The notes below the pieces were generated by a model. That model was not told where the DNA came from and did not search any database. It saw only the letters and a program-made list of their open reading frames with translations. A DNA stretch of 64,000 nt from Camelus dromedarius (taxonomy: Eukaryota), in the NCBI RefSeq assembly GCF_036321535.1, contig NC_087445.1, positions 18,910,001 through 18,974,000 of the forward strand, read 5' to 3'. Shown here piece after piece: positions 13,120-57,175 of this stretch (position 1 is the first letter of the stretch; every line of letters starts with the position of its first letter). Made by a program: the position numbers and the translations under genes.

Positions 13120-13650
13120 CTTGATTTCGACTTCCCGGAAACAACCCAGAATCTGTAAACACAGCACAACACGCCCTGCTACCGAGCCGTCAAGCCCCGA
13201 AGAAACCCACGCGGGTGTGAACCGCTCGGGCCAAAGCCTCCTGCCAGGAAGGGAAGGACGGGCGCGGGCAGGTGCGGAAAACGAAGGGCTCTGGGCGAAG
13301 CCGCGGCCGGCGGGGACCGGGAGGCCCGAGAAGGAAGCCGACTCACCGCTCTCGCCGCCCCCACGCGCTCGCGGGGCCCCGGCGGCGCCTCTCCCGGGCC
13401 GGGGCTCCTGCCCGCGGCGAACCCCACGTCCTCCCCGTGGCCGCAGCGCCCGAGTCCGTGGGGGCGGGACGCCCAGGCGGGTCCCGCGGGGTGGGCGGTG
13501 CCTGTCGGTCCGGTTCGGCGAGCTCGCGCGCCCCCTCCCGGCCGGCGGGGCGCAGTGAAGACAGCTTTGCGCGCATTGCTGAGCTAATGGCTCTGCTGCC
13601 CAGTTTTCCCTGCGGTCCAAGCAAAGCGCTGGATTCCTGGTCTCTCCGCA
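13120..13650. repeat. GC/CpG-rich triplicated element, copy A
   Basis: Core 13158-13508 is identical by eye to 29445-29795 and 56712-57062. Confidence 0.95.
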
Positions 13651-13960
13651 GATGGCAATGGCAATCCACAACACCCCTCACATTTTACACAGTTAGAGAA
13701 CATCATCCTCAATGTCATCAGTGAATAGCTTGGCAGCCCTGGAGAGCTTTGGTGATGCAGATGACCGGCTGTGCAGCCTTTATCCTGCTGAGCACCTTCC
13801 CACAAATGAGATGCTTAAGTAGGACACGGTTGTCATCTCTGCACTTGTCTCAACTTTGTTTCCACTTATTTTTTCAACTTCTATTTGTGGGCATCAGAAA
13901 ACAACATAACTTCAACACTTCTTTTGAATTATAACATTGGAAGTGAAATACACTCATGGA
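13640..13960 (-). pseudogene. Promoter and 5' fragment of a minus-strand IFN pseudogene, paralog of 31510-32220
   Basis: Aligns to 32030-32300 (GAAA-rich promoter and 5' UTR ..aaggctgcacagc..). Signal-peptide-like SLMTLRMMFS..GCCGLP then joins GC element copy A, apparently by deletion. Confidence 0.6.
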
Positions 13961-14374
13961 AAATGACAGAAGTCTCAACCCAGGTCTACACTAAGTATTT
14001 TAAATACTTTAATACAAGTACAGTGAAAAAATTAAAAAACAAAAATAAGTATAATATGAATTAAATTAACCCAAAAATACTTCAAAATATATATAAAATG
14101 AAACACTGTGCTTTTAAAATATTCCCACTTTTCAGTTATTCGATACTTTCCCCACCACGTCAATGCTGATCCCCGAAAGACCCCAGGAGACTCACAGAGC
14201 ATCTATGGGCGTACATCGCCCGGTCCCCTGCCCCGATGATGGCCGTACAAACTCACCCCCAGGGCGACACCAACTGATCCCTAGCACGCCCCCAAAACCA
14301 TCCAAACATCCCTACGTGCCCATAGGCTTTTTCCTTGGTCAGCCTGACAGGAAAGTGCTTAAACCTAGAAAAAC

Positions 14375-17300
14375 AGATACCATCTCCATGAGTCATAGCC
14401 TCAGGCCTCTCAGAATGGCTTGACTAAACTATGTAACTTGTCAAAGCAGCCGAAACCTAGAAAAAAAGATACAATTACATACTAGAGTCATAGGCTCAGG
14501 CATCTAAGGATGGCTTGGCCTAACGATGTAACTTGGGAAAAAAGCCCAAACTAAGAAAGACGCATACAACCAGATACAACCACGTAGTAGAGTCAAAGCC
14601 TCAGGCGTATCTACAATGCCTTGGCCTAAGGATGTAATTTAGGAAAACAGCGCAAACCTACAAAAACAGATACCACCTCAATGAGTCATAGTCTCAGGAC
14701 ACTCAGAATGGCTTGGCTAAACTATGTAAGTTGGAAAAGAGCCCAACTGTAGAAAAACAGAACCATGTAGTACAGTCATAGGCTCAGGCCTCTGAGAACA
14801 GCTTGGCTAAACTATGCAACTTGGGAGATAAGCCCAACCATAAAAAAACAAATACAACAATGCAGTGTAGTCATAGGCTCAGGCTTCTCAGAATGCCTGC
14901 TAAACTATGCAACTTGGCAGAAGAGCCCAACTGTAGAAAATGAGTTACAACCATGTAGTATAATCATAGGCCCAGCACTATAAGAACAGCTTGGATAAAC
15001 TATGTAACTTGGGAAAAGAGCCCAACCAGAGTAAAACAGATACAACCATGTACTATAGTCATAGCCTAAGGCCTCTCAGAATGGCTTGGCTAAAGAATAC
15101 AACTTCAGAGAAGAGCCCAGCCGTAGAAAAACAGTTACAACCATTTAGTTGAGTCATAGCCTCAGGTCTCTCAGAATGGCTTGGTTAAACTATGCAAGTT
15201 GGGAGAAGAGCCCAAGCATACAAAAACAGATACAACCATGTAGTTGAGTCATAACCTCAAGCCTCTCAGAACAGTTTTGATAAACTGTGCAACTTGGGAG
15301 AAGATCCCAACCATAGAAACAGAGTTACAATCATGTTGTATATTCATAGCCTCAGGCCTCTCAGAACGGCTTGGTTAACAATGCAACTTGTGAGAAGAGC
15401 CCAACCATAGAAAAAAAGTTACAACCATATAGTATAATCATAGGCCCAGCACTCTCAGAACGGCTTGGCTAAACTATATAACTTGGGAAAAGAGCACAAC
15501 CATAGTAAAACAGATACAACCATGTACTATAGTCATAGCCTAAGGCCTCTCAGAACCGCTTGGCTAAAGAATACAACTTCAGAGAAGAGCCCAAACGTAG
15601 AAAAACAGTTACAACCATGTAGTTGAGTCACAGCCTCAGGCCTGTCAGAATGGCTTGGCTAAACTATGTACCTTGTCAAAAGAGCCAAAACCTAGAAAAA
15701 AAGATACAATCAAGTACTAGAGTCATAGGCTAGGGCCTATGTAGAATGGCTTGTCCTAACGATGTACCTTGGGAAAAGAGTCCAAACGTGGAATAACGGA
15801 CACAACGGTGAACTAGAGCCATAGCCTCAGGCCTATTTAGAATGGCCTGGTCTAACAAGGTAACATGGAAAAAGAGCCCAAACCTACAAAAACAGTTACC
15901 ATCTCGATTAGCCATAGCCTCAAGCCACTCAGAATGGCTTGGCTAAATTATGTAACTTGTAAGACCAGCCCAAACCTAGAAAAAAAGATACACTCACATT
16001 ACAGTCATAGGCTCAGGACTCTCAGAATGGCTTGGTCTTATGTTGTAACTTGGGAAAAGAGCCCAAACCTATGAAACAGGATAACATCTCAATGAGTAAT
16101 AGCATCAGGCCTCTCAGAATGACATGGCTAAACAATGTAAGTTGTAAAAGGAGCCCAAACCTAGAAAAATGATACAATCATGTACAAGAGTCAAAGGCTC
16201 AGGCCTCTAGAACAGCTTGGCTAAACTATGCAACTTGGGAGAAGAGCCCAACCTAAGAAAAACAGTTACAATCATGCAGTATAGTCATAACCTCAGGCCT
16301 GTCAAAACAGCTTGGCTAAACTATGCAACTTGGGACAACAGCCCAACCTTAAAAAATACTGTTACAACCAGGTAGTTGTGTCATAGCCTCAGGCCTCTCA
16401 GAACGGCTTGGCTAAACTATGCAACTTGGGAGAAAGGCCAAGCGTAGAAAAACTGTTACAAACATGTAGTTGAGTCACAGCCTCAGGCCTGTCAGAACGA
16501 TTAGGCTAAACTATGCAAATTGTGAGAAGAGCCCAAACTTAGAAGAACAGATAAAACCATGTAGTATAGTCATAAACTCAGGACTCCCAGTACGCCTTGG
16601 CTAAACTATGCAACTTGGGAGAAGAACCCAACAGTAGAAAAATAGTTACAAACATGCAGTATGGTCGTAGCCTCAGGCCTCTCAGAACGGCTTGTATAAA
16701 CTATGCAAATGGAAGAAAAGCCCAACCTTAGAAAAACAGTTAGAATCATGTAGTATATTCATAGCCTCAGGCCTGTAAGAAAGGCTTGCCCAAACTATGC
16801 AACTTAGGAGAAGAGCCCAACCATAGAAACACAGATACAACCTTGTACTATAGTTATAGGCTCAGACCTCTCAGATCAGCTTCACTAATCTATGCAACTT
16901 GGGAGAAGAGCCCCACCATAGAATAACAGTTACAACTGTGTAGTATAGTCATAGCCTCAGGACACTCAGAAAGCTGCCTAAACTATGCAACTTGGGACAA
17001 GAGCCCAACTGTAGAAAAACTGTTACAACAATGTAGTATAGTCATAGCCCCAGACCTCTCAGAAAGCTGCCTAAACTATGCAACTTGGAACAAGAGCCCA
17101 ACCTTAGAAAAACTGTTACAACCATGTAGTTGAGTGACAGCCTCAAGACTGTCAGAAAAACTGGGCTAAAGTATGCAACTAGGGAGAAGAGCCCAACCAT
17201 AGAAAAACAGAAACAACCATTTACTTACTATATTCTTAGCCTCAGACCTCTCAGATCGGTTTCGCTAATCTATGCAACTTGTGAGAAGTGCCCAACTGTA

Positions 17301-19570
17301 GAAAAACTGTTACAACCATTTAGTATATCCATAGCCTCAGCCCTCTCAAAAAGCTTGGCTAAATAATGCAACTTGGGACAAGAACCCAACCGTAGAAAAA
17401 CAGATAAAACCATATAGTATAGTCATAGGCTCAGTCCTCTTAGAACGCATTGTTTAAACTATGCAACTTGGGAGGAGAGCCCAACCGTAGAAAAACAGAT
17501 ACAACCATGCAGTATACTCTTAGGCTCAGGCCTCTCAGAACAGCTTGGCTAAATTATGCAATTTGGGAGATTAGCCTGTGAAGGAAAAGCCCAGATGGGC
17601 TAATGAGCTAAGTCACAAATCTAAGTGTGATAAGTGTCGGTTTACTGATATAAATTCTGCCGGGCTAACTCGTAAATCTGAAGTTTAGTGTCAGTTTACT
17701 GGGCTAACAAGCTAACTCATAAATCCAAGCTCAACAAGTGTCAGTAACGTGATCTGTTCCGAATTGATAAGCTTCAGTGTACTGATTCCTTGCTTTTTGT
17801 TGTTTGAACCTTATTGGCTAATAGCCCCATACTTGTAATTAACCCTATAAAACCTCATGCGCATGTCTTGGAGGTGCTCAGAGCTTTGGAGCAGAAGCCT
17901 CTCTGAGCCCGCCAGCGTAATAAATCTGAGTACTCCAACCCTCTGAGTGGTGCTTGTTTCTTGGCTGGCCTGTCATTTCCGTAACAAGCCCAAACCATAG
18001 AAAAACAGATAGAAACATGTACTATAGTCATAGCCTCAAGCCTCTTAGAACAGCTTGGCTAAACTATGCAACTTGGGAGAAGATACAAACCATAGAAAAA
18101 AGTTACAATCATGTTGTATAGTCATAGTCTCAGGTCTCTCAGAACGGCTTGGTTCAACTATGCAACTTAGTAGTATAGCCCAAATGTAGAAAAACAGATA
18201 CAGCCATGTAGTTGAGTCATAGGCTCAGGCCTGTGAGGACCGCTGGGCTAAACTATGCAATTAGAGAGAGAGCACAACCATAGAAAAAGAGATACAACCA
18301 TGTAATACAGTCATAGCCTCAGTCCTCTCAGAACAGCTTGGCTAAACTATGCAACTTGGGAAAAGAGCCCAACCATAGAAAAACGGATACAACCATGCAG
18401 TATACTCTTAGGCTCAGAGGTCTCAGAATGGCTTGGCTAAACTATGCAACTTGGGACAAGAGCCAAACCGTAGAAAAAGATACAGCCATGTAGTTGAGTC
18501 ATGGGCTCAGGCCTCTCAGTACGGCTTGGCTAAACTGTGTAACTTGGGAAAAGAGCCTAACCATAGAAAAACACATACAACCATGCAGTATACTCATAGG
18601 CACAGGCCTCTCATAACGGTTTGGCTAAACTATGCAAATTGGGAGAAGAGGCCAACCATAAAAAACAGATACAACCATGTATATAGTCATAGGCTCAGGC
18701 CTGTCAGAACGGATTGGCAAAACTTTGCAACTTGGGAAAAGAGCCCAACCATAGAAAAACAGATACAACCATATAGTTGAGTCACAGCCTCAGGCCTTAG
18801 CTAAACTATGCAACTTGGGAGAAGAGCCCAACCATAGTGAAACAGATACAACCACGTAGTTGAGTCATTGGCTCAGGCCTCTCAGAACAGATTGGCTAAA
18901 CTACATAAGTTGGGAGAAGAGCCCAACCATAGAGTAACAGATACAACCATGTAGTATTGTCATAGCTTCAGCCCTCTCAGAACGGCTTGGCTAAAGTATT
19001 CAACTAGGGAGATGAGCCTAACCGTACAGAAACAGATACAACCAAGTAGTACAGTCATAGCCTCCGAACTCTCAGAACGGCTTGGCTAAATTACGTAACT
19101 TGGGAAAAGAGCCCAACCATAGAAAAAAGATACAACCTTGTAGGATAGTCATAGCCTGAGGCCTCCCAGAATGGCTTGGCTAAACTATGCAACTTGGGAG
19201 AAGAGCCCATTCATAGAAAACCAGATACAACCATGTACTTTAGTCACACCCACAGGACTCCCAGAACGGCTTGGGTAAACTATGTAAGTTGGGAAAAGAG
19301 CCCAACCATAGACAAACACATACAACCATGTAGTATATTCATAAGCTCAGGCCTCTCAGAACGGCTTGGCTAAACTATGCTACATGGGAGAAGAGCCCAA
19401 CCATAGAAAAACTGTTACAACCATGTAGTTCATTCATAGCCTCAGGCCTCTCAGGAAAACTTGGGTAAAGGACACCATTTGTCCCGCAGAACACGGTTAA
19501 AAGCCCAGAAAACACGCGACATACTGTGTGCACTACCAGACCTCTCAGAATGCCTTGTCTAAACTATGTA
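14375..19570. repeat. Tandem array of ~50 copies of a 95-bp monomer upstream of IFN-delta copy 1
   Basis: Consensus ~CATAGCCTCAGGCCTCTCAGAACGGCTTGGCTAAACTATGCAACTTGGGAGAAGAGCCCAACCATAGAAAAACAGATACAACCATGTAGTATAGT. Period is 95 (e.g. 15060 to 15155). About 50 anchors counted by eye. Confidence 0.97.
17577..17986 (+). mobile_element. Solo ERV1-class LTR (410 bp) inserted in the 95-bp array
   Basis: TG...CA termini (tgtgaagg...ccgtaaca) with a 4-bp target-site duplication AGCC (17573-17576 and 17987-17990). Internal ATTGG box, TATAAAA (~17847) and AATAAA (~17919). Confidence 0.9.
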
Positions 19571-19980
19571 ACTAACCCGGGTAACAGCGTAAAAAGAGCA
19601 AGAGTGTAAAAAGCCCGGAAGTTACGCAACCGTTACCTGTTAGCTACCAGATAAAAACGCCGCTGGCGAGGCCGCGACATTGCAAGCTCTTCAGCGTTCA
19701 GAACCTCGGAGAAAGAAGAGTTTTTCCATGCACTTTTAAAGCCGCATGTAATCGCTCACTTAGGGCGCGATGTACTTCCCCGCACGCTGCTGGAGCTTCT
19801 GAAACTCAAAACTCGAAAGTTGGCGTTTCGCAAACGCACGGGATCCGAAGTCCTCCTGCGCCCTCTCGCGGTCGCCTAGAGAAACACCCTCTCCCAGGAC
19901 CTAGCGAAAGAACCGTTCCCAAATTCTTTAGCGGGGTCCGAGCGCCACCTCGTGGCCTCATCAAATCACTGACATTCTCA
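19570..19980 (+). promoter_or_regulatory. CpG-rich, TATA-less proximal promoter of IFN-delta copy 1 with a degenerate IRF element
   Basis: Many CpGs. GAAACTCAAAACTCGAAAGT at 19801-19820. No TATTTAA-type box of the kind seen at IFNA and IFNW in this window. Confidence 0.6.
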
Positions 19981-20514
19981 ATGGCCCAGATCTGTGTGCT
20001 TGTGGCAAGAGTGATGCTCTGCTCCCTCCCTGCTTGCTCTCTTCCCAGGAACTTACCTAAGAGCCAGAACCTAGAAAACAAGGAGATCTTCAGGCTTTTG
20101 AGACAGATAAAAAGGACCCCCCTTCACTCATGTCTAAAGGACAGGAGGGACCTCAAACTTCCCTGGAAAAGAGACAATATCACCCAAAACCAGATGGCTC
20201 AAGGCCCCTGTTGCTACCATCACATGCTCCAGCAGATTTCCCAAGTCTTCAGCACAGAGCACAGCCATGCTGCTTGGGACAACACCTCCCTAAATAAACT
20301 ACTCTCCAGTCTGGATCTCACCCTGCACCAACTGGAGCAGGCTGAAGAAGGCAATCTAGACTGTGCCTTTTGGGGAACTACTGTTCGGGAGTATTTCCAA
20401 GCAATTCATCTCTACTTGAAGGAAAAGGAATACAGCCCCTGTGCCTGGGAGATTGTCAGAGAGGAAACTAAAAAGCGCCTTTCCTTCATGAAACATCCGA
20501 AATGGAAAGCATGA
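19981..20514 (+). CDS. IFND: Interferon delta, copy 1 (177 aa, intact)
   Basis: The MAQICVLV signal peptide, absence of the mature Cys1, CLKDRRDLKLPW motif and [10 protein letters not shown] are characteristic of IFN-delta. The ORF is uninterrupted. Confidence 0.9.
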   Translation: MAQICVLVARVMLCSLPACSLPRNLPKSQNLENKEIFRLLRQIKRTPLHSCLKDRRDLKLPWKRDNITQNQMAQGPCCYHHMLQQISQVFSTEHSHAAWDNTSLNKLLSSLDLTLHQLEQAEEGNLDCAFWGTTVREYFQAIHLYLKEKEYSPCAWEIVREETKKRLSFMKHPKWKA

Positions 20515-20559
20515 GTGAACAAACTTATTTTTAGGGAGAAGGACACAATCGATTTTCTC

Positions 20560-20565
20560 AATAAA
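20560..20565 (+). terminator. Candidate polyadenylation signal of IFN-delta copy 1 (paralog at 36724-36729)
   Basis: AATAAA begins 46 nt after the stop codon in both IFN-delta copies. Confidence 0.55.
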
Positions 20566-25140: not shown

Positions 25141-27799
25141 AAATGATTTTTGTTCCTGTAATATGATGTGTACCCATACACTGTGGCTAATTGAAAAAAA
25201 ATATACTCTTTGTATTTACTCAATGTATTATTTTCTTTGTTCATTAAACTTTTTTTCTATAGAAAACTAATTGTACTTGTTTATTATTTAAAAAAGAAAC
25301 ACCATGTCTGATTGTAATCTGATTAAATAGTGGATAGTACCATTCACTACTCATTACTATGTCACTCAAGGTATAAGAAAAAGGAGATTTTCTCTAAGCC
25401 AGGTTATATGTTGCCCGAAGGACATAGAGGTCAATGCGACAAATCCAACCCTATTTTCTTGCATCATTGGTTTTTGTAGAGAAATCATCCAAAAAATAAC
25501 AATCATAATTAATATGAATTATAAAAATGTTATACTGAGAAGAAGTGGAATAAAAAGTTATTTCTCAGCAGAAGCTGGAGAAAGAAAAGTCAAGAAATAA
25601 AAATGAAAGTAGTAGGTATCCTCTACATTTGAGTGCTCAACATCTGATTGCAAATAGCTTTTGGAAAATAGACTTTTGAGTCTGAAATCCACAAGCAATC
25701 ACATGAGTTGAAAGCCAAGGAACACAAGTAGTCCTGTGTGAAAAGTGAATAGAAGGAGAAAAGGACTTAAAACATTGACTCACAGAACCTTCAACTAATA
25801 AAGGGAGGCAAGATCCACCAAGGAAACTGAGGAAGAATGGCCGTAAGTTAACAGGATGAAAGGGAATAGGTTCCCACGAACCTATTTAAAAGGTGAAAAC
25901 TGCTCCCCAGAATCGCACCATCGCAAATGTGAACTGAAACTGCCCTCTGCATGGGGAAAACAGCTGTCCCTGGTGATCTTACTGGGAGCTGGTCTGGTCG
26001 GGTTGATCACCAGACAGCACACTGGGCGAAGGGTGAATATGAGAGATTAGTGACAATATACGTAGGAACCAGCTTTGAAAGATTTGCCTTCTGAAATGCA
26101 GGACAGAAATAGAGCGGTGACTAGAAACAACTGTGGATGTTTTTGTTTCTTCCTGCACAGTTGTCTCTTTCCAAACATATTTATCTCTAGATAGATTTCA
26201 TGGATTTGATGTATTGGCAAATCACATTCATATGTTAGTATTTTATTGATTTTAAATCATGACATATTGAGTTACTTACAATGAGAACTTTTGATTATTT
26301 TGATTAATAGGATGTTGAATGTCACTAAGCTGCTCTGTTGTTGACACCATCAACCGCACGGGAAACAGATGGAACTGACCTCGGTGAGAGCGTGCTTGGT
26401 GGAATTAATCAGCAGAAACCGTACTGGAGCAGCCGCAAGGCGGTAACACACGAGGAGAATCCCACTGTCACTTTTTTTTTAGTTTACTTGTTTCACTCTC
26501 ATCAGAGTCAGATTTGCATTTGTTTTCCTTTTGCCTCAGTGCATCCAAGGGCAATGACTGCTTTCTAAGAATGCTGAAGGGAGGACAAAAACAATGACAT
26601 ATTGAGAATTATGGGAAATAATGGCATGTTTCCAGTTTTACTTCCCTATTTTGGTACTAACCTCGAGATGAAACAGAAAGTACTTCAGAAGTAACAAGAC
26701 AACTCTTGCCCAGGAAAAAATTTTAAAGTCAAACGAGCATATAAAATTTTAAAGACTCTAGAACTAGTAAAGCAAAGATGGCTAGTTTTCCCGAGCATCA
26801 AGTACTGACCTCGCAGCCCTACATTTTCATTGTGAGACAGAGAGAGATGAATCAAGAAGTTCAGCAGAAATACACTGACTGAATAATCTAGGGACACTTA
26901 TTAATTACTTCACCATAAGCCTCCAACGGTAGGTGAATCATCACTGAATCCTTGGGGCCAGCTCAGAAACTTGAGAATATAGTAAATATTCAACAGTTTA
27001 ACGAACTGAACTCAAGACAGAAACCAACATTTAGCAAAATGCAATTCCCTTCAGGTAAAAAGGAGAAAGAAAAAGGTAACTTTTCCAAAACCCTGTTCCT
27101 GTGCACGGCCACACACACACATGGTGCATCATGTTTGGCTTGTTTCATCTGGAAGCTTTGGAAATACTTCAAACCTGTATATGCGATGAAAACAACAGAG
27201 GTTGTTCACAGAAACACCCTTAGATCCAGAACAGCTGATTGTTTTGGGGAAAAAAACAATTACCCTTGAATAAAAGTTGAAAGTGTGATGAGCTGACTCA
27301 CGGCTATCCACTGAAGAATGAGTTACCGGGGGTTCAGATGGAAGATGTGTGGCTGTGTTCACACTGAGCCGAAGAGTGAGATTACACGTGTGCTAATGAG
27401 TGAGGGGAGGTGGGGCCATAAAGGATAAACATTTTGTGGGTCTTGGAATTAGAACTGAAATGCCTGTGCTCACTGAAAATAATGAAGAAATCAGCTACAA
27501 ATTTTGAGAGAACAGCCTGAAGAGTCATTAGCAGGAAAACGTTGAAAGAGTGGAAAATGCCAGTTGCATTTCTGATCAGGAGGCTCTAGTGAAGCACTTG
27601 CCACCTGCTCATACTTTTGTAGACAAAATCCGACAGTCTCAGTCATTCATCATTTTATCTTGAGCAATTCACATGAACCCTGGATAACGAGAAAATTGTG
27701 AACAGGTCATAGACCTTTCTCCTTCGGCAGTTACTCATCAAATGGTCCCCATTCCTGAAAGGACAAATCCAGAGGAATGAGGAAGCTTGGCTGACTATG

Positions 27800-28196
27800 G
27801 GAGATGGATGGCAGCCAGCTCCGGAAGGCCCAGGCCATCTCTGTCCTCCACGAGATGCTCCAGCAGATCTTCAACCTCTTCCACGCAGAGCGCTCCTCTG
27901 CTGCCTGCGACACCACCCTCCTGGACAAACTCCACACTGGACTCCATCAGCAGCTGGAGGACCTGGACACCTCTTTGGTGCAGGTGATGGGAGAGCAAGA
28001 CTCTGCCCAGGGAAGGGCGGGCCCTACACTGGCCGTGAAGAGCTACTTCCAGGGAATCCATCTCTTCCTGAAAGAGAAGACAGACAGCGACGGTGCCTGG
28101 GAAATTGTCCGACTGGAAATCATGAGATCCTTCTCTTCATTAACCAATTTGCAAGAAAGGTGAAGAACTAAGGATGGAGACCTGGGGTCACCTTGA
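27800..28196 (+). pseudogene. 5'-truncated IFN-omega pseudogene
   Basis: Closely matches the 3' two-thirds of 44208-44795 from MDGSQL onward. It lacks the promoter, signal peptide and helix A. Conserved Cys are lost (DTSL, SDGAW), there is a premature TGA at 28161-28163, and the ancestral stop is at 28194-28196. Confidence 0.9.
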
Positions 28197-29399
28197 CATG
28201 ATTCTCCCTGACCGAGATGCCATGTCACCCTTGCACATTGGTCTGTGGTCATTTCAAAAGACTCTTATTTTTGCTTTAGCCACAGCATCTATTGAATTAA
28301 CTCAGTTAATACTTTGTCTGTAGTAATGAGCAAGGATATGGTAAAATTCCTGAGCTTAAGGATCATCAGTCCCTATGCAATGACTTCCCTGTTATTTATT
28401 GTTGATTTATTTATATTTATTCTTGAAACTTAGATATTTACATTTTCATATAGATGTTACATTGTGTTAAAATTTTAAAAATATGCTCACCTTGCCACTT
28501 CATTAAGTTTGCATCTTGTTTTATGTATTAAATTCTATGAAAGAAAACTTCTTTTTTTTTTTTAATTCTGAAAACCTAAAACCATATATTTTCTATAGAA
28601 ATCTCTCTCAGAATACTATTTGTCCATTATATCTTATGGAACAGTTCTACCACTTTCTAGGAACTGCTTTTCAAATAGTGGAATTCCACGGAATTGAGAG
28701 GAGTCATGGAAATTGCGATAAATGTATAGTCCTTATGCCACACGTTTCACTGATTTATATCCAGTTAGCAAAGAGTGGTTGGTAGGTAAACATCTGAGAG
28801 GTGTCCACTCCTCCAGTGAAGTTGGAACACATAGGGTATTGATCGGCTGCTGCTGCTGCCAGCTCTTCCTCTTCCTCGCACCTGCTCCCCAGTCCTGCTT
28901 CCCTGAATCGCTCACTTCCTCATCCAGTAACTTCGCTCCCTCCAACTTACTGCCCATCCACACACGTGCTCTCGTTCTGTGCTGCTTTCTAGCTTCAAGG
29001 TGTCTCTTACAGTGGAAGCCACAGGAAGAGAGCAAAAGTGAAAGGAGAGCTCGAGGATTTTCAAAACCTCAGGTAGAAGGAGCCGGGGACATGGGGCTGG
29101 ATCCCAGCTCTGTTATTAATAACTGTATGACCCTGAGAAACAACACAAATACCATGCTCCCTAGTTTTCTCATCTTTCATATGGGGACAAGAATAATAAT
29201 GTTCCATAGGATTACTGTCAGATTTCCGTGTACTTAACCTTTAAATTAAAGCTTTTTCAACAACTAACAGTGTAGGAGATATTAAACATTTATATTAAAT
29301 GAAATCATAGATACACACACACACACACATTTTCCCTTTCATCACCCGGGGCCCCTTTAAGTCTCGGAGGGTCCCAATATCTAGTCCAGAGTAGAATCC

Positions 29400-29940
29400 T
29401 TTCCCTGAACTGTGTTTCTCCTCAGAAACATTCCTCAGTCTGAGAACACAGCACAACACGCCCTGCTACCGAGCCGTCAAGCCCCGAAGAAACCCACGCG
29501 GGTGTGAACCGCTCGGGCCAAAGCCTCCTGCCAGGAAGGGAAGGACGGGCGCGGGCAGGTGCGGAAAACGAAGGGCTCTGGGCGAAGCCGCGGCCGGCGG
29601 GGACCGGGAGGCCCGAGAAGGAAGCCGACTCACCGCTCTCGCCGCCCCCACGCGCTCGCGGGGCCCCGGCGGCGCCTCTCCCGGGCCGGGGCTCCTGCCC
29701 GCGGCGAACCCCACGTCCTCCCCGTGGCCGCAGCGCCCGAGTCCGTGGGGGCGGGACGCCCAGGCGGGTCCCGCGGGGTGGGCGGTGCCTGTCGGGCCGG
29801 CACGGCGAGCTCGCGCGCCCCCTCCCGGCCGGCGGGGCGCGGTGGAGACAGCTCTGCGCGCATTGCTGAGTGGAGGAGGGCTGCTCAGCTTCACTGTGGT
29901 CCAAGGGCAGCGCTACATTTCTGGACTCTTGGTCTCTCTA
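29400..29940. repeat. GC/CpG-rich triplicated element, copy B
   Basis: Identical by eye to copy C over ~29415-29853, and to copy A over 29445-29795. Confidence 0.95.
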
Positions 29941-30508
29941 GTTGTTCACATGCACCACGTTTCTCCGATTGCTATAATCTGGCTTCAGCCTCCCTGTTCT
30001 CTTGAAACTGCTCGGCCAAGGTTTACACTAAACTACATGTTGCCTAACTCAGAGATGACTTGTCAGGCAGCTGTCGGCGGACATTTCAGAAGTATCGGAC
30101 GCCTACGTGTTCCCACGACCATTTTAAAGTCTGACCTACATCTGGTTCCTACGTCACCATCATCCTCTGCTTTTCTGCTCCTCCTCCTCCCCTTCCTTTG
30201 TGGACCACTCCCTCTCCTCTCAGGGAATGGCGGGGTTCCTCAAGAGTCTATGCTAGTTCCCACACTTCATCTCCTCTGCACAGAGTCCCACCTCCCAAAC
30301 AGTCCCAAGTGTCATCTCTAGGATTACGACTTCCGTATGCATGTCTTAGCCAAGAGTCTCATCTCCAAACATTTGTAATCATCTCCAAACCCATATAGCT
30401 ACCTCCTACCCCAGAACATCTCCACATACCATGTCCACAATTGACCGTCATGCAATTACCTGGCGAATCCCTGCACACCCCTGAGATGCCAGCACACCAG
30501 TTGCTTCT

Positions 30509-30545
30509 TCTGTAGTCAAATGCTCTCCCACTGAGCTGTACCCCC
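30509..30545 (-). pseudogene. Tailless retroposed 5' half of tRNA-Cys(GCA)
   Basis: The minus strand reads GGGGGTACAGCTCAGTGGGAGAGCATTTGACTACAGA, 34/37 to the vertebrate tRNA-Cys 5' half as I recall it. It is flanked by the 14-bp direct repeat AGTTGCTTCTTCTG (30499-30512, 30549-30562). Confidence 0.75.
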
Positions 30546-31509
30546 ATTAGTTGCTTCTTCTGGAAACATTCCATGACCCATGCAAGGCCCACGTGCTCCC
30601 AGCATCCCGTACTTTCTCTATCACAGCATCAGCCTCCTTCCATTCACTGCTCTGTTGCACACATCCTCACCAAACGGGGAGTTCTGTGAAGGCAGGCAGC
30701 ACGTCTACTCTTTTCATTGTGTCTGGCACCAGCACAGGGCCAACAAAGACAAAGGGGTAGTCACTACTTATTGGCTGAAGCTTAAATTCCATGAGCCTAT
30801 AAATATATTTCGCTTCAGTTCTCTTTCACACAAGGACAGAAATTCAATCAACAAGCATTAGACATGTGTCCTCCAGGGAACTGAATCGCTCCTGTTGCTA
30901 CAACATGCCTTGTGCATATCCTTCATAGCCCTAGAAAAGCTTCCCTCCTATTTACTTGCTCTTTAAGGCCTGTCTTCTCTGCCAAAGTGCCCTATTTAAG
31001 AAAGTAGTACTTCTTTCGTAAGAAGAAGAAGAGTTTATCTACCATTATACTCACAAGTCAGTTACTGGGTGCAGAGATAACTGAAATTTTTTTAAAACTC
31101 AATGAGATGAATAAAACTATGTTCCACTTGGATTTTAAGGCAGATTCAATCTTTAAGGACACTTTGTATGTCTTTAAGAGTATGAGTAAGAACTAAAATT
31201 TAAAATATACCTTTGAAACCCCCAAAGACAAGGGAAACAAGATCATAAAGCTGACCATACAATGCGATGAGGAAATTCCATAAATACAACAATCAGCATA
31301 GAAAAAAATTTCTATTTATTACAAATTTAAAATACAGAGTTTCCCGATTCAAAGTATAGTTTCCTCTAAGTATTGCAAAACAATCTGCCGGGATGACTCA
31401 GTGCGTTTACAACTGAAGAACAAAGGGCCTTGAATTGTGTGAATATTGACCCGCTTGAGGCCACACAGGAGGCGCTAAGACTAAGCGGTGAAAGGCTGGG
31501 CGCAGGTCT

Positions 31510-32055
31510 CCTTTCCAGCTCCGGGGTTTTCTCGGAGATGATAACACAGCGAGAGCACATACTGACTTTCTCATCTTAACTTCCAGTTTGACAGAGTCCC
31601 GGGCACAGTAGCTCTGTGCTTTCTTCCCACATCGAGCGGGGGTCTTGGAAGGAGCTCTTCAAAGTCTGGCTGGAGTCCTCACTGCCCAGGGGGTATTTTC
31701 CTCCCCACCTCCTGCTCCAGACTGGTCTCCAGAGCCTCCCTCTGCTGATGCAGCCCAGTGAGGGATTTAGGCTGTTTGGGCTGAAGAGGCTGAAGGCCTG
31801 CTGGAGCATCTCATGAAAGAAGAGGTGGCCTGAGCGCTTGGGAACCGGCTGCTGTCCAGCTGGTTCTGGGGGAACTAGAAAACATGCTCGTCCTCCAGGC
31901 AGGGAAACAAGGAAGAGTCTCTCATTTGGTGCAGAACTGTGACGGTCTCCGGCTCTGGCGGGCCATGCTTCTGGGCCGGGTTACAGCTAAGGGTGTGGAC
32001 AGACCTGGAGAGCAGACCGCCCTCCAGGTCCTCAGTGAGGAGGCTGGCAGCCCCT
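31510..32055 (-). pseudogene. Minus-strand type I IFN pseudogene with a retained GAAA-rich promoter (~32170-32220)
   Basis: LSCNPAQKH, TVLHQMR, FPCLEDEHVF*FPQ, HEMLQQAFSLFS, LTGLHQQ and EDSSQTLKSSFQ, with a stop, frameshifts and no ATG. Confidence 0.8.
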
Positions 32056-33110
32056 GCTGAGCCTGGTGATGTAGCTGATCAGCTGTGCAGCCTTCACCCA
32101 GCTCCTCTGAGCACCTTCCTGCACGGGAGAGTCTTCAACGGAACAAGGTTGTCGTTTCTCTGCTTGTCCCATGTTTGTTTCCACTTTTTCCAGTTTCTCT
32201 TCCATTTTTCAGCAGAAGATAATGTCACAGCTTCAATACCTCGTATGTATTGTTACGCTGGAAGTTAAACACAGTCATGGAAAATGACAGAATATCAATC
32301 CAATAGGATATGTTTGCCTGAATTAGACCCAAGAAAGAAAACCTGAGTCTCAATCCATCTTTTTCAAAATTTTAATAAGAATACTTAGACATTTATCTTT
32401 AACAATACATCAGATATTATTCTATAATAATATCCCATTATAGCTATTTTCCATAAGAAAATGTCATAGAAAATAGTTTACTGTATTTTCACACCTCCTA
32501 ATGCACCAAAATACAAGTGGCCTCACCTCTCTGCATTTCCCTTTTACGGTCTAAGGCATTAGATTTGAATCCTCTGCATGTCTTTACAGAAGACATAGCT
32601 CACATTTCTGGACACTGTCTATGTATAATAGGGGCATAAATGTTAACAGCAAGGTTTAATCCATAACCTTCTCTTCATTTTGTCACCAACGTAGGCTAAC
32701 TGCACACATATGTGACAATGTGCTTGGCAATGTGGATTCCAGGAGAGGAAGACAGGGACGGTGACTGCGGTCCAGGGAGCCGGGAAGACAGACATGAGAG
32801 GCAGGGTGAGGATGAAGGAGGCCCCAGCAGCATCAGGGCAGCTGAGGGCAAGGGCTCACAGCTGATGACCAGGAGGGCCTGGGAGCAGCAGGAGCCTCCA
32901 CTCTGACAAAAGCTGTGCCTCCTGACTTAAATGACTGGTGACTTTCATTGTGTCTTTCAAAACATCAAGACAAGTTCAGCGGTGCTCACCAGGGAAATTA
33001 TAAAGATGGAATGAAATAAAGTTTGCAAAATACAGGCTGAGAGAGAACAGAGTGAATGACAGCTGCCTGGAGCATGAATACAACACCCAGGAAGCTGTCC
33101 GGTCCCCGCT

Positions 33111-33155
33111 CAGCCCAGCCCAGCCCAGCCCAGCCCAGCCCAGCCCAGCCCAGCC
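33111..33155. repeat. (CAGCC)9 pentanucleotide microsatellite
   Basis: Nine perfect units, read directly. Confidence 0.95.
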
Positions 33156-34009
33156 CAGAGTGGCTCTGGCTGCAGCTCCCGTCACACTGTCAGGGGTCTG
33201 CACGGGGAGGCCCCCAAATGCAAGCTCCAGGAGCCGCACTGCCCGCGGGACTGTGAGGGAGCAGAGCCCAGGTCTCCACACTTAGAACAGTGCCTGGTAT
33301 AGTATGGAGAGAAATCTTACAGCATGTGGTGTATTTTGCAGACACCCAGCATCTAGAAGAGCTGTCTGACAAAAACGGCTGTTGTGTGTGAGGCATCTAA
33401 TGCAGGTAAACAGTCCTGTCCCTCATCCGCAGTTATTCTCAGATCACCTCTGGGAAAACTAGTTTAAAACACAGACTTGAAAAAGAAAACAGTCTGAAAG
33501 AGTAGGAAATCGGTTCAGAAATATGCACGGGCGTGTATGTATGACTGAGTATTATGCTGTAGGACGGTATAACATTGTAAACTGACTCTACTTCAATTAA
33601 AAATTTTTAATTGAAAGAAGAAGTACACATGGGGTAGAGGGGTTGGAGAAATGGGACTTTCCTAAATTTTTAGCTAGGAATGATCATAAAATGAATTCAA
33701 AACTATTTCCTGGGTTAATATAAGGGTAAAGAAAGGAAAATCTTCCCTCAAGCATTGATTGCGAGCAGGCATCAAATCGACGGAACAAGAGAAACAATAT
33801 TTTAATGCAACATAAATAAATGAAATTGTACAATGTACAAAAGGAACAACAAAAAGGAAAATGTTAAATAAAGACCAGAATTGACCCTGCACTCCCAAAT
33901 CGCTGAGAGTTTTAAGAAAGGAAGCCTTCAGGTTGCTGGCATAAAAATTGGCACTTGCGTCTGCCTTCTCAAGTCGGGAGTCATGTGGGCACTTGGAATC
34001 CACCTCTGC

Positions 34010-34421
34010 CTGGGTTAAACATTAGCCTGCAACCTCTAGGCTGCAACAGGCCCTAAAAGGAGTTCAGGGTGGAGATCAGGAAGGAGGCACCCTGGGCTCT
34101 GCGGGAAACGTGGCAGAACAGGCCTTCAGGAGAAGGTTTCAGGAGCCCAATGCTTGCTCATATCTCATGCCAAGGAGGACACTAAAACCAGTAACTGTGA
34201 CATCATCTCCTCCTGACTAGCAGCAAGCCCCTGCCTAAATGTGCCCTTGACCGCACCTGCCCCTTCACTGAAATCCTCTCTAATATGGACCTTCCCGCCT
34301 GCCTCTTCCCAGTGGTTCCTCAGAGCTATCTGAATGCTGTCTCCTGGGATACAGCCCTCATTTTGCTCCAAATAAAACATAACTCCCAACTCTCACTTTG
34401 TGGAGTTTAGGTCAGTCGACA
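34010..34421 (+). mobile_element. LTR of a family also found at 40.7-41.2 kb (-) and 61.1-61.6 kb (+)
   Basis: Shared motifs (aaaggagttcaggg..gagat.agga, cagagctatctga). AATAAA lies near the 3' end and the terminus is cagtcgaca. Confidence 0.65.
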
Positions 34422-35169
34422 TGGCCAATGAGATTGGGGCAAATTTGCTTTAATCGATGAAATTCATACCAAAGAAAATGAAGAGCTCAGACCTGCCAAA
34501 TGTCCTCAGTGCTGTGTACAGAACACTTAACTCCTCTTTCTAACAAGATAGTCAAGGTGGGGTCCTGAGAAAGTCATTTCAGGAACCTCAGTCAAATAAA
34601 AATTGTTGAAGAGTCAACAAGAAGTCGTCAAACACAGCTGTCCTCCCAAAGAAGGAAAGAAGTAATGTTGGGAAAATTAATGAGTTGGCTTCGTATCAAC
34701 TAGGAAAGCAAAGTTATACCAGATTCTTGCTTTAGTATAAGGAAACTATAGTTTAAATAGCCTTTAGTAAAATGCAGTGCTTTAATATTAAAACATATTT
34801 TAATATTCCTTGTTTCATATTCTAAATATTTTAATAAATATATTTAAAGATGACACATTTAACAAGATTTAAATATGACATGAATTAAATTAAACACAAG
34901 ATTAATTTAAAAATCTATTTTTTAAAATGCTGTGAGTTTTGAAATAATCCCACTTTTCAGGTATTCACTACTTTCCCAACCATTTCAACGCTGATCCCTG
35001 AAAGACACCAGGAGACTCTCAGAGAATCTAAGGGCGCACAGCGTCCCCGTCCTCCGCCCTGAAGGCGGCCGTGCACCAACTCACCCTCAGGGCAGCCACA
35101 ACTTACCCACAAGGCGCCCATGACACTTTCCACTCATCCCTATGCGCCCGTGGACTTCAACATTGGACA

Positions 35170-35735
35170 GCTGAGATAAAGAGCCCAAACATAAAATAAC
35201 GGATACCATCCTGATGAATCACAGGCTCAGGCCCCTGAGAACGGCTTGGCTAAACTATGTAACTTGGGAGGAAAGCCCAACCGTAGAGAAACACATACAA
35301 CCATGTAGTTGAGTCATAGGATCAGGCTCTGGGATCCACTTGGCTAAACTATGTAATTTGGGATGAAAGACCAAGGGTAGACAAACTGATACAACCATGT
35401 AGTAGAGTCATAGGATCAGGCTCTGGGAACCGCTTGGCTAAACTATGTAATTTGGGATGAAAGACCAAGGGTAGAAAAACTGATACAACCATGTAGTTGA
35501 GTCTTAGGATCAGGCTCTGGGAACCGCTTGGCTAAACTATGGAAATTGGAATGAAAGACCAACCTTAGAAAAACACATACAAGAATGTAGTTGAGTCATA
35601 GGATCAGGCCGTGGGAACCGCTTGGCTAAACTATTTAATTTGGTATGAAAGACCAAACATAGAAAAACATATAACCACGTAGTAGACTCACAGACTCAGG
35701 TCTCTCAAACTGCCCTGTCTATACTAGGTAACTAA
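35170..35735. repeat. Short array (~6 monomers) of the same ~95-bp unit upstream of IFN-delta copy 2
   Basis: Anchors near 35220, 35315, 35409, 35503, 35597 and 35688. Shares GCTTGGCTAAACTATG and GATACAACCATGTAG with the long array. Confidence 0.92.
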
Positions 35736-35962
35736 CCCAGGTAAGAGCGTAAAAAATGCAAGAGTGTTAAAAGCCCGGAAAATAGACAACCGGTCCCTGT
35801 TTGCTACCAGATAAAAAGGCCGCTGTTGAGGCCGCGACTTGACAAGCTCTTCAGCGCTCAAAACGTCGGAAAACGAAAAGAGCTTTTCCGTGCACTTTTA
35901 AAGCCGCAGGTAATCGCTCACGGAGCACGCGATGTACTTCCCCGCGCGCTGCTGGAGCCGCT

Positions 35963-35982
35963 GAAACTGAAAACTCGAAAGT
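35963..35982 (+). promoter_or_regulatory. IRF-binding element upstream of IFN-delta copy 2
   Basis: GAAACTGAAAACTCGAAAGT contains a perfect GAAANNGAAA and starts 182 nt upstream of the ATG. Confidence 0.6.
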
Positions 35983-36144
35983 TGTGGTTCCGCAAAAGCA
36001 CGCGATCCGATATCCTCCTGCGCCCTCTCGTGCTCGCCTAGAGAAACACCCTCTCCCAGGACCTAGCGAAGGAACCTTTCGCTAACTCTTTAGCGGGGTC
36101 CGAGCGCCACCTCGTGGCCTTATCGCGAGTCACTGACATTCTCA

Positions 36145-36678
36145 ATGGCCCAGATCTGCGTGCTTGTGGCAGGAGTGATGCTCTGCTCCCTCCCTGCTTG
36201 CTCTCTTGCCAGGAACTTGCCTGAGATCCAGAGCCTAGAAAACAAGGAGATCGTCAGGCTTTTGAGACACATGAAACGGACCCCCCTTCACTCATGCCTA
36301 AAGGACAGGAGGGACTTCAAACTTCCCTGGGAAAGAGACAATATCGCCCAAAACCAGACGGCTCAAGGCCCCTGTTCCTACCATCAGATGCTCCAGCAGA
36401 TTTTCCACCTCTTCAGCACAGAGCACAGCCATGCTGCTTGGGACAACACCTCCCTAAATAAACTACTCTCCAGTCTGGATCTCACCCTGCACCAACTGGA
36501 GCAGGCTGAAGAAGGCAATCTAGACTGTCCCTTTTGGGGAACTGCTGTTCGGGAGTATTTCCAAGCAATTCATCTCTACTTGAAGGAAAAGGAATACAGC
36601 CCCTGTGCCTGGGAGATTGTCAGAGAGGAAACTAAAAAGCGCCTTTCCTTCATGAAACATCCGAAATGGAAAGCATGA
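36145..36678 (+). CDS. IFND: Interferon delta, copy 2 (177 aa, intact)
   Basis: Paralog of 19981-20514 with 19 aa differences. CLKDRRDFKLPW, HQMLQQIFHLF and [10 protein letters not shown] are present. Confidence 0.9.
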   Translation: MAQICVLVAGVMLCSLPACSLARNLPEIQSLENKEIVRLLRHMKRTPLHSCLKDRRDFKLPWERDNIAQNQTAQGPCSYHQMLQQIFHLFSTEHSHAAWDNTSLNKLLSSLDLTLHQLEQAEEGNLDCPFWGTAVREYFQAIHLYLKEKEYSPCAWEIVREETKKRLSFMKHPKWKA

Positions 36679-44207: not shown

Positions 44208-44795
44208 ATGGCCTCTGTGCCCTCTCTACTGATGGCCTTGCTACTGTCCAGCTATGGCCCTGGTGGGGCTCTGGGCTGTGACCTGCCACAGAACCACGTG
44301 CTAGTTAGCAGGCAGAACTTCGTGCTTCTAGGCCAATTGAGGAGAATCTCCCCTTTCTTCTGCCTGGAGGACAGAAAAGACTTCCGTTTCCCCCAGGAGA
44401 TGGTGGATGGCAGCCAGCTCCAGAAGGCCCAGGCCATCTCTGTCCTCCACGAGATGCTCCAGCAGATCTTCAACCTCTTCCATGCAGAGCGCTCCTCTGC
44501 CGCCTGGGACGCCACCCTCCTGGACAAACTCCTCACTGGACTCCATCAGCAGCTGGAGGACCTGGACACCTGTTTCGTGCAGGTGATGGGAGAGCAAGAC
44601 TCTGCCCAGGGAAGGGCGGGCCCTACAGTGGTGCTGAAGAGCTACTTCCAGGGAATCCATCTCTACCTGAAAGAGAAGAAATACAGTGACTGTGCCTGGG
44701 AAATTGTCCGACTGGAAATCAAGAGATCCTTCTCTTCATTAACCAACTTGCAAGAAAGGCTAAGAATTATGGATGGAGACCTGGGGTCACCTTGA
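44208..44795 (+). CDS. IFNW: Interferon omega (195 aa, intact)
   Basis: [31 protein letters not shown] and the omega-type 6-aa C-terminal extension (MDGDLGSP). Confidence 0.92.
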
Positions 44796-54799: not shown

Positions 54800-55580
54800 T
54801 TTTCTTTAGTTTTGCCTGTCCTAAAAACTACATCAAAAACACACAGACACTCGATGGGTATCCGGTCAAACGCAATCATGACACTTCACACACAACCTAA
54901 AGATGTTTACCAAATATTAAAAGATATAATATCAAGTGACAATATACATTATGCTGAAATCTAAAGCATCTTGGCACAAATAGGTTATTTTATGCAATTT
55001 AATTTGGTGAGATGACATTTTGAACCAAGTGGGAAAATTTAATAAAGCTCTACCAAGACCCCCAGAAACCCATCCACATATAAAGCAGCTGGCTTCACAG
55101 AGGCCGATCCGTTGCTTACAACAAATGAGGGAAAGTAACTTTGAAAGTATGCTGATAAATGGAAAATGCTAGGAATAGATATGAATGCACTTTCCAAATT
55201 TGAAAATAAATGGGAAAAAAAGTTAAGAAATTGGAAATGTCGGAATCACTGGATGAAAGTATCCATTATTATGGGCTATAAGCATATAAGCCATTAACTT
55301 GGCTCTTAAATATTATGATGATTTAAGTTCTGTACAAATTAATTTTCAGTGGTTTTAAGCAAGATTCAACATCAGTAATTTGTAATATAAAACTGATTTC
55401 ATGTTTGGATCTTCTGAAATGATTCATGAATGTGGTTTAATGCAATCTTACCAAAATTTGGAAGTGGTCTTGTAAATTTTATAGAAAATACTAGTCACAG
55501 TGGGATGCTGCCAAACAATTCTCAGTGAACTGAAGTTAATTAAAAATTATTTAAGACCACAAAATATGTCAAAAACAGCA
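54800..55580 (+). mobile_element. Fossil hAT (Tip100/Zaphod-like) transposase C-terminus
   Basis: 55491-55570 translates to LVTVGCCQTILSELKLIKNYLRP, matching the hAT dimerisation motif PVTVASAERSFSKLKLIKNYLRS. The 5' extent is uncertain. Confidence 0.6.
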
Positions 55581-55599
55581 ATCTTTTTTTCTTGCAGAT

Positions 55600-56037
55600 T
55601 AAAAAAGTTGAAGTATAGTTGATTTACAGAGTTTCAGGTGTACAGCAAAGTAATTCTTATACATAGATATGTACATACATCCTTTTTAATATTCTTTTCC
55701 ATTACAGGTTCTTACAACATACCGAAATAGTTCCCTGTGCTATACAGTAGTTCTTTGTTGATCTACTTTATATATACTAGTGTGTATCTGTTAATCCCAA
55801 ATTCCTAATTTATCCCTCCCCTCACTTCCCCTTTGGTAACGGTAAGTTTGTCATCTATCTCTGTGAGTCTCTTTCTGTTTTTTAAATAAATTCAGTGGTA
55901 TCATTTTTTAAGATTCCACATAAAAGTAATATATGATATTTGTCTTTATCTGACTTACTTCACTTAGTATGATAATCTCTAGGTTCATCTATGTTGCTGC
56001 AAATGGCATTTTTTTCTTTTTTTGAGGCTAATATTAC

Positions 56038-56080
<43 letters not shown>

Positions 56081-56290
56081 ACAACCTTTAATGAAAAAGA
56101 ATAGGAACACGAATGTAGACACATATATATGCATGACTGGGACATTGTGCTGCACACCACACAAAGAAGGATAGATATACCACTTCTTTATCCAGTCAGC
56201 TGTGGATGGACATTTAGGTTACTTCCATGTCTTGGCTATTGTAAATACTGCTGCTATGAACATTGGGATGCGTGTATCTTTTTGAATAAA
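55600..56290 (-). mobile_element. L1 3' end with an internal (AT)n tract at ~56038-56077
   Basis: Antisense L1 tail (gaagtatagttgatttaca.., aggttcatctatgttgctgcaaatggc.., cttggctattgtaaatactgctgc..). Confidence 0.75.
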
Positions 56291-56659
56291 AACAGCAATT
56301 CTTCACAATGAAAAGAAGATAATCAAAGAAGTATAGTTTGAAAATGGATTAGTTTCCTTTTATTAGCATGAAGAAAGTAAAATTATAATGACTTCTGCTT
56401 TGGGTATAGGTAAAACATTTAAATTTAAAATGTTAATTTTAATTTATTTACTTTTAATTTTTCCATTTTTTTCAACTAGTTTAGCGCGGTAAGGAAACTT
56501 AACCATTTTCAAAATTCATAAAAGCAAGCGCATAGGGGAACAGTTTATCTTTTGCCTCCAGCCAGCCTCAGCTGGGCACTGATCGAGTCCCTGTCATTCC
56601 ACCTGGAGGACTGGAGGATCCCATTACTTCGTACATTCATGTCCAGACTGTAGCTGCCT

Positions 56660-57175
56660 TTCCCCTTTCCCTGAATTCGACTTTCTCCTCAGAAACATTC
56701 CTCAGTCTGAGAACACAGCACAACACGCCCTGCTACCGAGCCGTCAAGCCCCGAAGAAACCCACGCGGGTGTGAACCGCTCGGGCCAAAGCCTCCTGCCA
56801 GGAAGGGAAGGACGGGCGCGGGCAGGTGCGGAAAACGAAGGGCTCTGGGCGAAGCCGCGGCCGGCGGGGACCGGGAGGCCCGAGAAGGAAGCCGACTCAC
56901 CGCTCTCGCCGCCCCCACGCGCTCGCGGGGCCCCGGCGGCGCCTCTCCCGGGCCGGGGCTCCTGCCCGCGGCGAACCCCACGTCCTCCCCGTGGCCGCAG
57001 CGCCCGAGTCCGTGGGGGCGGGACGCCCAGGCGGGTCCCGCGGGGTGGGCGGTGCCTGTCGGGCCGGCACGGCGAGCTCGCGCGCCCCCTCCCGGCCGGC
57101 GGGGCGCGGTGGAGACAGCTTTGCGCGCACTCAATGAGCGGCGGTTTGGGGCGCAGTTTCACTGTGGTCCACTAC
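56660..57175. repeat. GC/CpG-rich triplicated element, copy C
   Basis: See copies A and B. The offset from B is a constant 27267. Confidence 0.95.

Follow-up and report, generated by a model that had tools for sequence, protein, structure and literature searches.

A CpG-island Exon Identical at Three Sites among Dromedary Interferon Genes Is Spliced into RNAs Antisense to IFN-omega

Results

Three Copies of a CpG-rich Element Share an Identical Core

The window analyzed here is a 64-kb stretch of Camelus dromedarius DNA that holds genes and relics of IFN-omega and IFN-delta; it was placed at 18,900,001–18,964,000 of CM070319.1 in assembly GCA_036321535.1. A short CpG-rich element occurs in it three times, as copies A (13086 to 13645, about 560 bp of homology), B (29398 to 29929), and C (56635 to 57171), all assigned to the minus strand; coordinates are window positions throughout. 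A preliminary description of this DNA had reported a 351-bp stretch shared by three loci, and exact string comparison agreed: the stretch is 100% identical at 13158–13508, 29445–29795, and 56712–57062. This core is 76% G+C (GC 0.76) and contains 49 CpGs, with an observed/expected CpG ratio (o/e) of 0.97. Between copies B and C the longest identical run was 439 bp, where about 440 bp had been estimated.

Self-comparison of the window limited the homology shared by A, B, and C to about 560 bp per copy. Outside the core, identity was 60–85% in shoulders of 70–140 bp and then fell to noise apart from scattered patches, so the decay of identity away from the core was also as first described. The homologous but diverged flanks were recovered on the left side of A and C (12853–13075 versus 56297–56526, 69%). 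Copies A and B share a patch on the right (13707–13982 versus 32021–32302, 72%), 95-bp satellite arrays (about 72%), and the IFN-delta genes with their surroundings (89%). These patches place A and B in one 16.2-kb tandem duplication.

The 560-bp alignments contain 47–70 differences each, none of which falls in the 351- and 439-bp identical runs. When the differences were permuted within the 560-bp element in 2000 trials, the longest identical run was 83–123 bp, and an analytic bound for differences avoiding the core gave p < 1e-27. The core is a discrete, sharp-edged tract inside older, diverged homology, as is characteristic of gene conversion.

Each copy lies within a CpG island of 640–700 bp (GC 0.66–0.68, o/e 0.89–0.97) under the criteria of length >200 bp, GC ≥0.55, and o/e ≥0.65, which are also satisfied by the alpaca and Bactrian camel copies. 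The only other strong CpG island in the window, at 5281–6000, belongs to a neighboring Kelch gene, and its comparison with the element gave no homology above shuffled controls. An Rfam scan of the window returned zero matches.

Copy Number in Independent Reads and Assemblies

Among the sampled words of copy A and its flanks, 98% were present in 14 DNA runs from nine studies. The contig layout over 8400–14300 was read from two DNA read sets, both with other organism labels. In these two runs the A-specific left contig (depth 9.5 and 44) stops at 13187, 30 nt into the core, and the A-specific right contig begins at 13524. The core forms a single 396-nt contig (13158–13553) with a depth of 79 and 472, which is 8.6 and 10.5 times single copy, and this contig does not differ from the window across 13158–13508. 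A 60-nt node carrying the B/C-type left junction had depths of 63.5 and 386. These values indicate about 9–10 copies per genome, most of them with B/C-type edges. Thus, the identity reported for three loci is real, but the three are not the sole copies. Contigs drop rare variants, and for that reason the A-specific letters 13509, 13514, and 13515 are absent from them. In a recent Bactrian camel assembly the exact 396 bp were found at 11895–12290 of locus L010, 1.3 kb past an intact IFN-omega gene.

The Minus Strand Carries an Exon End, a Used Splice Donor, and the Start of an Intron

On its minus strand the core consists of 162 nt of exon, a splice donor, and 189 nt of intron. In copy A the exon ends with ...GAGAGCG|GTGAGT at 13347|13346. 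The part of the exon that is covered at minimum by RNA contigs spans 13347–13583; contigs end or branch at 13347, and the equivalents in B and C end at 29634 and 56901. The 5' splice site GTGAGT occupies 13341–13346, the intron starting at 13346, and the same site is found at 29628–29633 and 56895–56900. The first 189 nt of the intron (13158–13346) lie entirely within the 100% identical core. The donor is kept in alpaca, at 3898–3905 of locus L011.

RNA contigs were available from two studies of "reproductive system metagenome" libraries. In these contigs the exon 13583–13347 halts or branches exactly at the donor and is then joined to interferon letters. The letters past the donor match 44635–44664 and 28036–28065 exactly; in other contigs they match 7198–7227 and 27651–27678 with one mismatch each. 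The joined letters belong to the sense strand of interferon coding sequence (KSYFQGIHL), which makes this an RNA antisense to an interferon gene. The junction contigs hold 27–131 nt of reverse-complemented IFN-omega coding sequence joined to the minus-strand exon, and it is on the minus strand alone that all three junctions obey the GT-AG rule.

The main junction requires two bases of the intact IFN-omega type, with the minus strand reading TTTCAG|GTAGAG and exon 2 starting from 44666. The intact IFN-omega gene lies on the plus strand at 44208–44795; its minus-strand acceptor CAG|G is located in the coding sequence, with the AG at 44668–44667. An IFN-omega pseudogene 0.8 kb from copy B (27805–28584, plus strand) has a homologous acceptor at 28067, which is used by an automatic gene model at 27795–30792. 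This variant was considered for the main junction and rejected, as it does not fit the required bases, and a junction at 28067 was not seen among the RNA contigs. One RNA contig links the core donor to a further minus-strand acceptor exon (27651–27679, start at 27679). The third acceptor exon starts from 7227, inside an IFN relic (6973–7710, plus strand) that is located downstream of copy A on the minus strand. The main acceptor stems from the conserved interferon codons for LYLKEKKYS, whose reverse complement yields a pyrimidine tract followed by CAG, and the same acceptor is present in the intact IFN-omega genes beside B-like copies of Bactrian camel and alpaca.

A search for the joined exon form in the DNA runs found none, so that the junctions reflect splicing and not a retrocopy. 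In RNA run X17 the A-specific flanks were free of contigs, which speaks against carry-over of DNA in that run. The RNAs resemble natural antisense transcripts in that they are transcribed from the opposite strand, overlap interferon coding sequence, are spliced, and have their 5' exon beyond the 3' end of an interferon gene (0.8–1.3 kb past IFN-omega).

Indels of −1, −1, and +5 between camel and alpaca shift every frame of the exon, and neither Pfam nor two protein searches gave a match for frames across it (queries camel 56689–57159 and alpaca L011 3653–4168). By this evidence the exon is non-coding. Automatic minus-strand gene models cover it in camel (27795–30792, 208 residues) and in alpaca (L011 2019–4991, 211 residues); neither has a family match, and none could be traced to further copies.

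Comparison with Alpaca

Two alpaca loci, L011 (assembly GCA_048564905.1) and L012, were used for comparison. Positions 1–9503 of L011 align to camel 25781–35254 at 92.7%, which identifies this locus as the orthologue of copy B; its element has a CpG island at 3561–4300 with an o/e of 0.88. In the flanks, camel B and its alpaca orthologue are 92–95% identical. For the right flank the values were 94.6% between camel B and alpaca, compared with 52% between camel B and A and 50% between camel B and C. For the 351-bp core the order was reversed, with 93.7% between camel B and alpaca (22 substitutions and four indels) and 100% between camel B and both A and C. The second alpaca copy, at L012, lies beside an intact IFN-omega gene. 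Its core is 100% identical to that of L011, and the two loci are 99–100% alike over more than 4 kb rightward and 88–98% alike leftward.

Within each lineage the paralogous cores are thus more alike than orthologous cores between lineages, while the flanks group by orthology, which is the pattern of concerted evolution. Focal non-allelic gene conversion after the speciation of camel and alpaca is strongly supported by this sequence comparison. The preliminary description had suggested ongoing focal gene conversion and named camelid orthologues as one way to check it; the check turned out in its favor, with camel paralogues at 100% and the alpaca orthologue 6.3% different. Since three copies show no difference in 351 bp, the last homogenization was probably recent, within about 1–2 million years as estimated from ordinary mammalian mutation rates.

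At the left edge of the element (29329–29400) the identity of B-like units rises from 88–96% to 99–100% in both camels and in alpaca, and the same step was seen near 29338 for camel B against Bactrian L010. A rearrangement breakpoint in alpaca (L008 11514–11517) lies 70 bp from the left edge. The left edge of the element may be prone to recombination. No copy of the element was found within 10 kb at alpaca L003, L008, or L009 or at rhinoceros L014. The L008 locus is interrupted 70 bp ahead of the position where a copy would be expected, and L009 stops 1.8 kb before the C orthologue.

Homologues in Cattle, Age, and GC Bias

Two homologues of the element were found in cattle, at 5432–6213 and 13440–14243 of locus L013 (E 1e-44 to 1e-64), 2.8–3.3 kb past IFN-omega-like genes and in the same orientation. 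This position argues that the element is part of an old duplication unit and not a mobile insertion. The alignment of a cattle copy to camel A runs for 685 bp, well past the core. With about 9–10 copies, of which those seen all lie in interferon-locus units, the element does not have the characteristics of a transposon, target-site duplications and terminal repeats not having been searched for. Of the two outcomes that would have spoken against the preliminary description, an assembly artifact and a young high-copy transposon, neither was borne out by the reads, the Bactrian assembly, and the cattle homologues.

The flank of camel A is 74–75% identical to the cattle copies and 75% identical to camel C; because it is equally close to both, the age of the paralogues is about that of the camelid-ruminant split. 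Between the two cattle copies identity is only 74%. The copy at 5432–6213 has kept its CpG island, received a SINE insertion, and lost the donor, and the copy at 13440–14243 has kept a GTGAGG donor and lost its CpGs (o/e 0.31). The decayed cattle copy shows what becomes of the element in the absence of correction.

The 22 core differences between camel and alpaca were polarized by the two cattle copies. On the alpaca lineage this gave eight weak-to-strong, no strong-to-weak, and two neutral changes, and on the camel lineage two, one, and two, respectively. The total is 10 weak-to-strong changes against one strong-to-weak and four neutral, with seven sites without polarity and an outgroup of 64–71% identity. 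The possibility of GC bias raised at the outset gains tentative support from the ratio of 10 to one, drawn as it is from few sites and a distant outgroup, and we lean slightly toward a GC-biased conversion. An unpolarized count (camel weak/alpaca strong 13, reverse four) was discarded as evidence against GC bias, since the outgroup shows most of the changes to be weak-to-strong and on the alpaca lineage.

Interferon Genes around the Element

The distances from the element to IFN-delta sequences agree with those first given (about 6.4, 6.3, and 0 kb). One IFN-delta gene (19981–20514, plus strand) lies 6.47 kb from copy A and is divergent from the exon, a second (36145–36678, plus strand) lies 6.35 kb from copy B, and an IFN-delta-like relic (57201–57632, plus strand) abuts copy C at about 30 bp. 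The gene at 36145 clusters with the GenBank entries "interferon-delta-2..7 precursor [Camelus dromedarius]." On the other side of the element there is an IFN-omega gene, at 0.8–1.3 kb in camel, Bactrian camel, and alpaca and at 2.8–3.3 kb in cattle. In this arrangement the conserved partner of the element is the IFN-omega gene and not IFN-delta. The proposal of an unannotated promoter traveling with IFN-delta was therefore right in part. A transcribed exon with a used donor does exist; with both on the minus strand, however, the core is directed away from IFN-delta, and IFN-omega is its partner.

Both IFN-delta genes are also rich in CpG at their 5' ends (19721–20040 and 35841–36220; GC 0.55–0.56, o/e 0.95–1.05), which is unusual among interferon genes. 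Between the element and IFN-delta lie the 95-bp satellite arrays, a long one in the unit of copy A (14375–19500) and a short one in that of copy B (35170–35740). At the left end of the window an open frame on the minus strand (3343–5217) encodes BTB, BACK, and Kelch domains, contains masked stretches of N (3612–5127), and has its own CpG island at 5281–6000. It is consistent with KLHL9, a gene that usually resides at this locus. The exon of copy A is 8 kb upstream of this gene on the same strand, and the junction at 7227 falls between them. It is conceivable that the exon of copy A serves as an upstream alternative exon of the Kelch gene.

Start of the Transcripts

Contig depth was used to estimate where the RNAs begin. 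Donor k-mers had depths of at least 21 and at least 65, and contigs that also hold the upstream kilobase averaged 7.9 and 13.9. Flow arithmetic gives a depth of about 4–5 in the upstream part, a fall of about 5–15-fold from the exon, although contig mean depths are a poor measure. By this arithmetic, the majority of transcripts seem to start within the island or close to it. The CpG content implies, from sequence composition, a germline state that would be unmethylated, as in promoters. We favor, with some reserve, the island as the main promoter of these RNAs, the start inside the island being inferred.

Two relics of interferon-type promoters lie upstream of the element. A stretch with GAAA-rich repeats on the minus strand (13706–13982) is located directly upstream of copy A and is homologous to 32020–32302. 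The latter sits 2.4 kb upstream of copy B and heads a minus-strand IFN relic at 31574–32036; relic and promoter together (31574–32302) are found 1.6 kb upstream of B on the same strand and are a possible alternative start. In copy A a deletion has removed most of the relic gene and the 1.6 kb after it, so that no more than 60 bp separate the promoter relic from the element.

Discussion

The identity of the cores, their copy number, the splice junctions, the pattern of orthology and paralogy, and the cattle homologues lead us to the following proposal. The 351-bp core is the central part of an old CpG-island element of about 560 bp, which belongs to a tandem duplication unit of the artiodactyl type I interferon genes composed of an IFN-omega gene, the element, the 95-bp satellite, IFN-delta, and IFN-alpha. 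The minus strand of the element carries the 3' portion of a non-coding exon, followed by the GT donor in use and the beginning of an intron, and splicing of this donor to acceptors in the reverse-complemented LYLKEKKYS codons produces transcripts antisense to IFN-omega genes and relics. The copies predate the split of camel and alpaca by far. In Camelus, short-tract non-allelic conversion (351–439 bp at A and C, kilobases among the B-like units) has overwritten them time and again, and conversion with one sequence also holds every copy CpG-rich. As a whole, we consider it quite probable that a converted CpG-island element serves as exon, donor, and intron start of RNAs antisense to IFN-omega.

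Several observations weigh against this proposal or parts of it. The junctions seen in RNA do not reveal which of A, B, and C they came from, and the acceptor of the main junction, being of the intact IFN-omega type, may belong to a B-like unit beyond the window. Since contigs drop rare variants, the core of A or C may contain a private variant. In the Camelus ferus assembly GCA_009834535.1 (L005–L007) the B-like cores have a deletion of 16–22 bp in their most GC-rich part and a few single-nucleotide polymorphisms (SNPs), which are common to L005 and L006; these deletions and SNPs may be assembly errors or real variant copies. The CamDro3 copy (L004) also disagrees with the window; it is full of single-base indels and was left out of the comparisons. 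The count behind the GC bias is small, with an outgroup of only 64–71% identity. The argument for a start inside the island uses contig mean depths, against which there is a warning as a poor measure. Finally, B-type RNA contigs reach 979 and 1254 nt upstream of the island, and because of this extension at least some transcripts start upstream of it, possibly at the interferon-type promoter relics.

The last point leads to the alternative that fares best. The island may not be a promoter but lie within a long first exon, or within a 3' extension, of transcripts that originate from the virus-inducible promoter relics at 13706–13982 and 32020–32302. The upstream continuation of the RNA contigs by 1.0–1.25 kb would be explained in this way, the GAAA repeats upstream of A and B resemble those of interferon promoters and are on the same strand, and the automatic gene models begin upstream of the island, at 30792 in camel and at L011 4991 in alpaca. 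On the other hand, the o/e is about 0.9–1.0 in every camelid copy, which speaks for an unmethylated germline state typical of promoters, the contig depth is about 5–15-fold lower upstream of the exon, and copy C has no adjoining promoter relic. We regard this origin of the transcripts as possible but less likely; it is compatible with gene conversion of the element.

With regard to the identity itself, a recent duplicative spread was considered, in which the A and C sites had no older element and only lately received a young B-type segment. The depth of about 9–10 copies, mostly with B/C-type flanks, would fit such a spread, as would the B-like units, which are recent segmental duplicates with 95–100% identity over kilobases. 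However, the shoulders of both A and C (70–140 bp) keep 63–85% homology to B, alpaca, and cattle, and the cattle copy aligns to A over 685 bp, beyond the core. These diverged shoulders and the long cattle alignment imply that an old element was already present at the A and C sites, and a recent spread is therefore improbable.

We judge it still less probable that the identity is an artifact of assembly or polishing, by which reads of paralogues were mixed in a GC-rich stretch and one consensus was written at three places. The stretch is indeed very GC-rich, older assemblies disagree here, and contigs do not prove the identity of each single copy. Yet in independent short-read graphs from two other organism labels the collapse occurs precisely at 13158, with a 396-nt node of 8.6–10.5-fold depth, the 14 DNA runs of nine studies contain 98% of the sampled copy A words, the exact core is present in the independent Bactrian assembly, and the alpaca assembly repeats the pattern with a sequence of its own. 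Purifying selection alone on an ultraconserved exon or promoter, without sequence exchange, could appeal to the used donor and probable promoter in the core but is practically excluded, because the alpaca orthologue has diverged at the neutral rate (93.7% in the core with 22 substitutions and four indels, compared with 92.7% for the neutral flanks) and the intronic part (189 bases) shows no less identity than the exonic part, and cattle copies are only 64–74% alike.

With gene conversion of an antisense exon as the preferred reading, the closest known system is the human IFN-alpha1 antisense RNA (Kimura et al. 2013, PMC3607724), which has also been described in guinea pig. It is spliced and non-coding, is transcribed from the opposite strand of IFNA1, and stabilizes the IFNA1 mRNA; its 5' exon sits about 3 kb beyond the gene and is spliced to an exon that overlaps the IFNA1 mRNA, the human antisense exon beginning 242 nt past the poly(A) site (PMC3607724). 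The camel RNAs are alike in layout. They differ in that the partner is IFN-omega, that the acceptor is located inside the coding sequence, and that the 5' exon is a CpG island in about 9–10 converted copies.

Concerted evolution by gene conversion is established for the coding genes of mammalian IFN-alpha. The camel element shares with it the locus, the mechanism, and the signature of likeness within a lineage; in contrast, what is converted in camel is a short non-coding tract across an exon-intron junction within a CpG island, next to interferon genes and flanks that have remained diverged. Orphan CpG-island promoters of long non-coding RNAs form a general class, which the camel element resembles in its island criteria, the lack of a protein-coding gene, transcription, and a donor that follows. 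It differs from this class in that part of the camel RNA starts upstream of the island. The element thus adds to two known kinds of phenomena, interlocus gene conversion and interferon antisense RNA.

By analogy to the effect of the human RNA on IFNA1, the antisense RNAs might regulate IFN-omega, which we put forward as a doubtful extension only. More doubtful still is a wider view, in which the element would be the shared promoter and first exon of artiodactyl-wide, constitutive antisense RNAs that control IFN-omega, for example in the reproductive tract. In that case, the acceptor in the reverse-complemented helix codons would place gene and regulator under mutual constraint, and the island edge would be a recombination hotspot driving both copy correction and rearrangements of the cluster.

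The locus provides a clean, dated case of concerted evolution that acts on a short non-coding exon and CpG island and not on the adjoining interferon genes, and the cattle copy that has lost its CpGs illustrates the outcome without correction. The findings point to spliced antisense transcripts of IFN-omega in camelids, with a layout as in the human RNA, the single interferon antisense RNA whose function has been studied. Their first exon dates at least to the common ancestor of camelids and ruminants. The element is thereby a candidate regulator in a gene cluster that is important for antiviral defense and whose ruminant relatives, the IFN-tau genes, act in pregnancy signaling.

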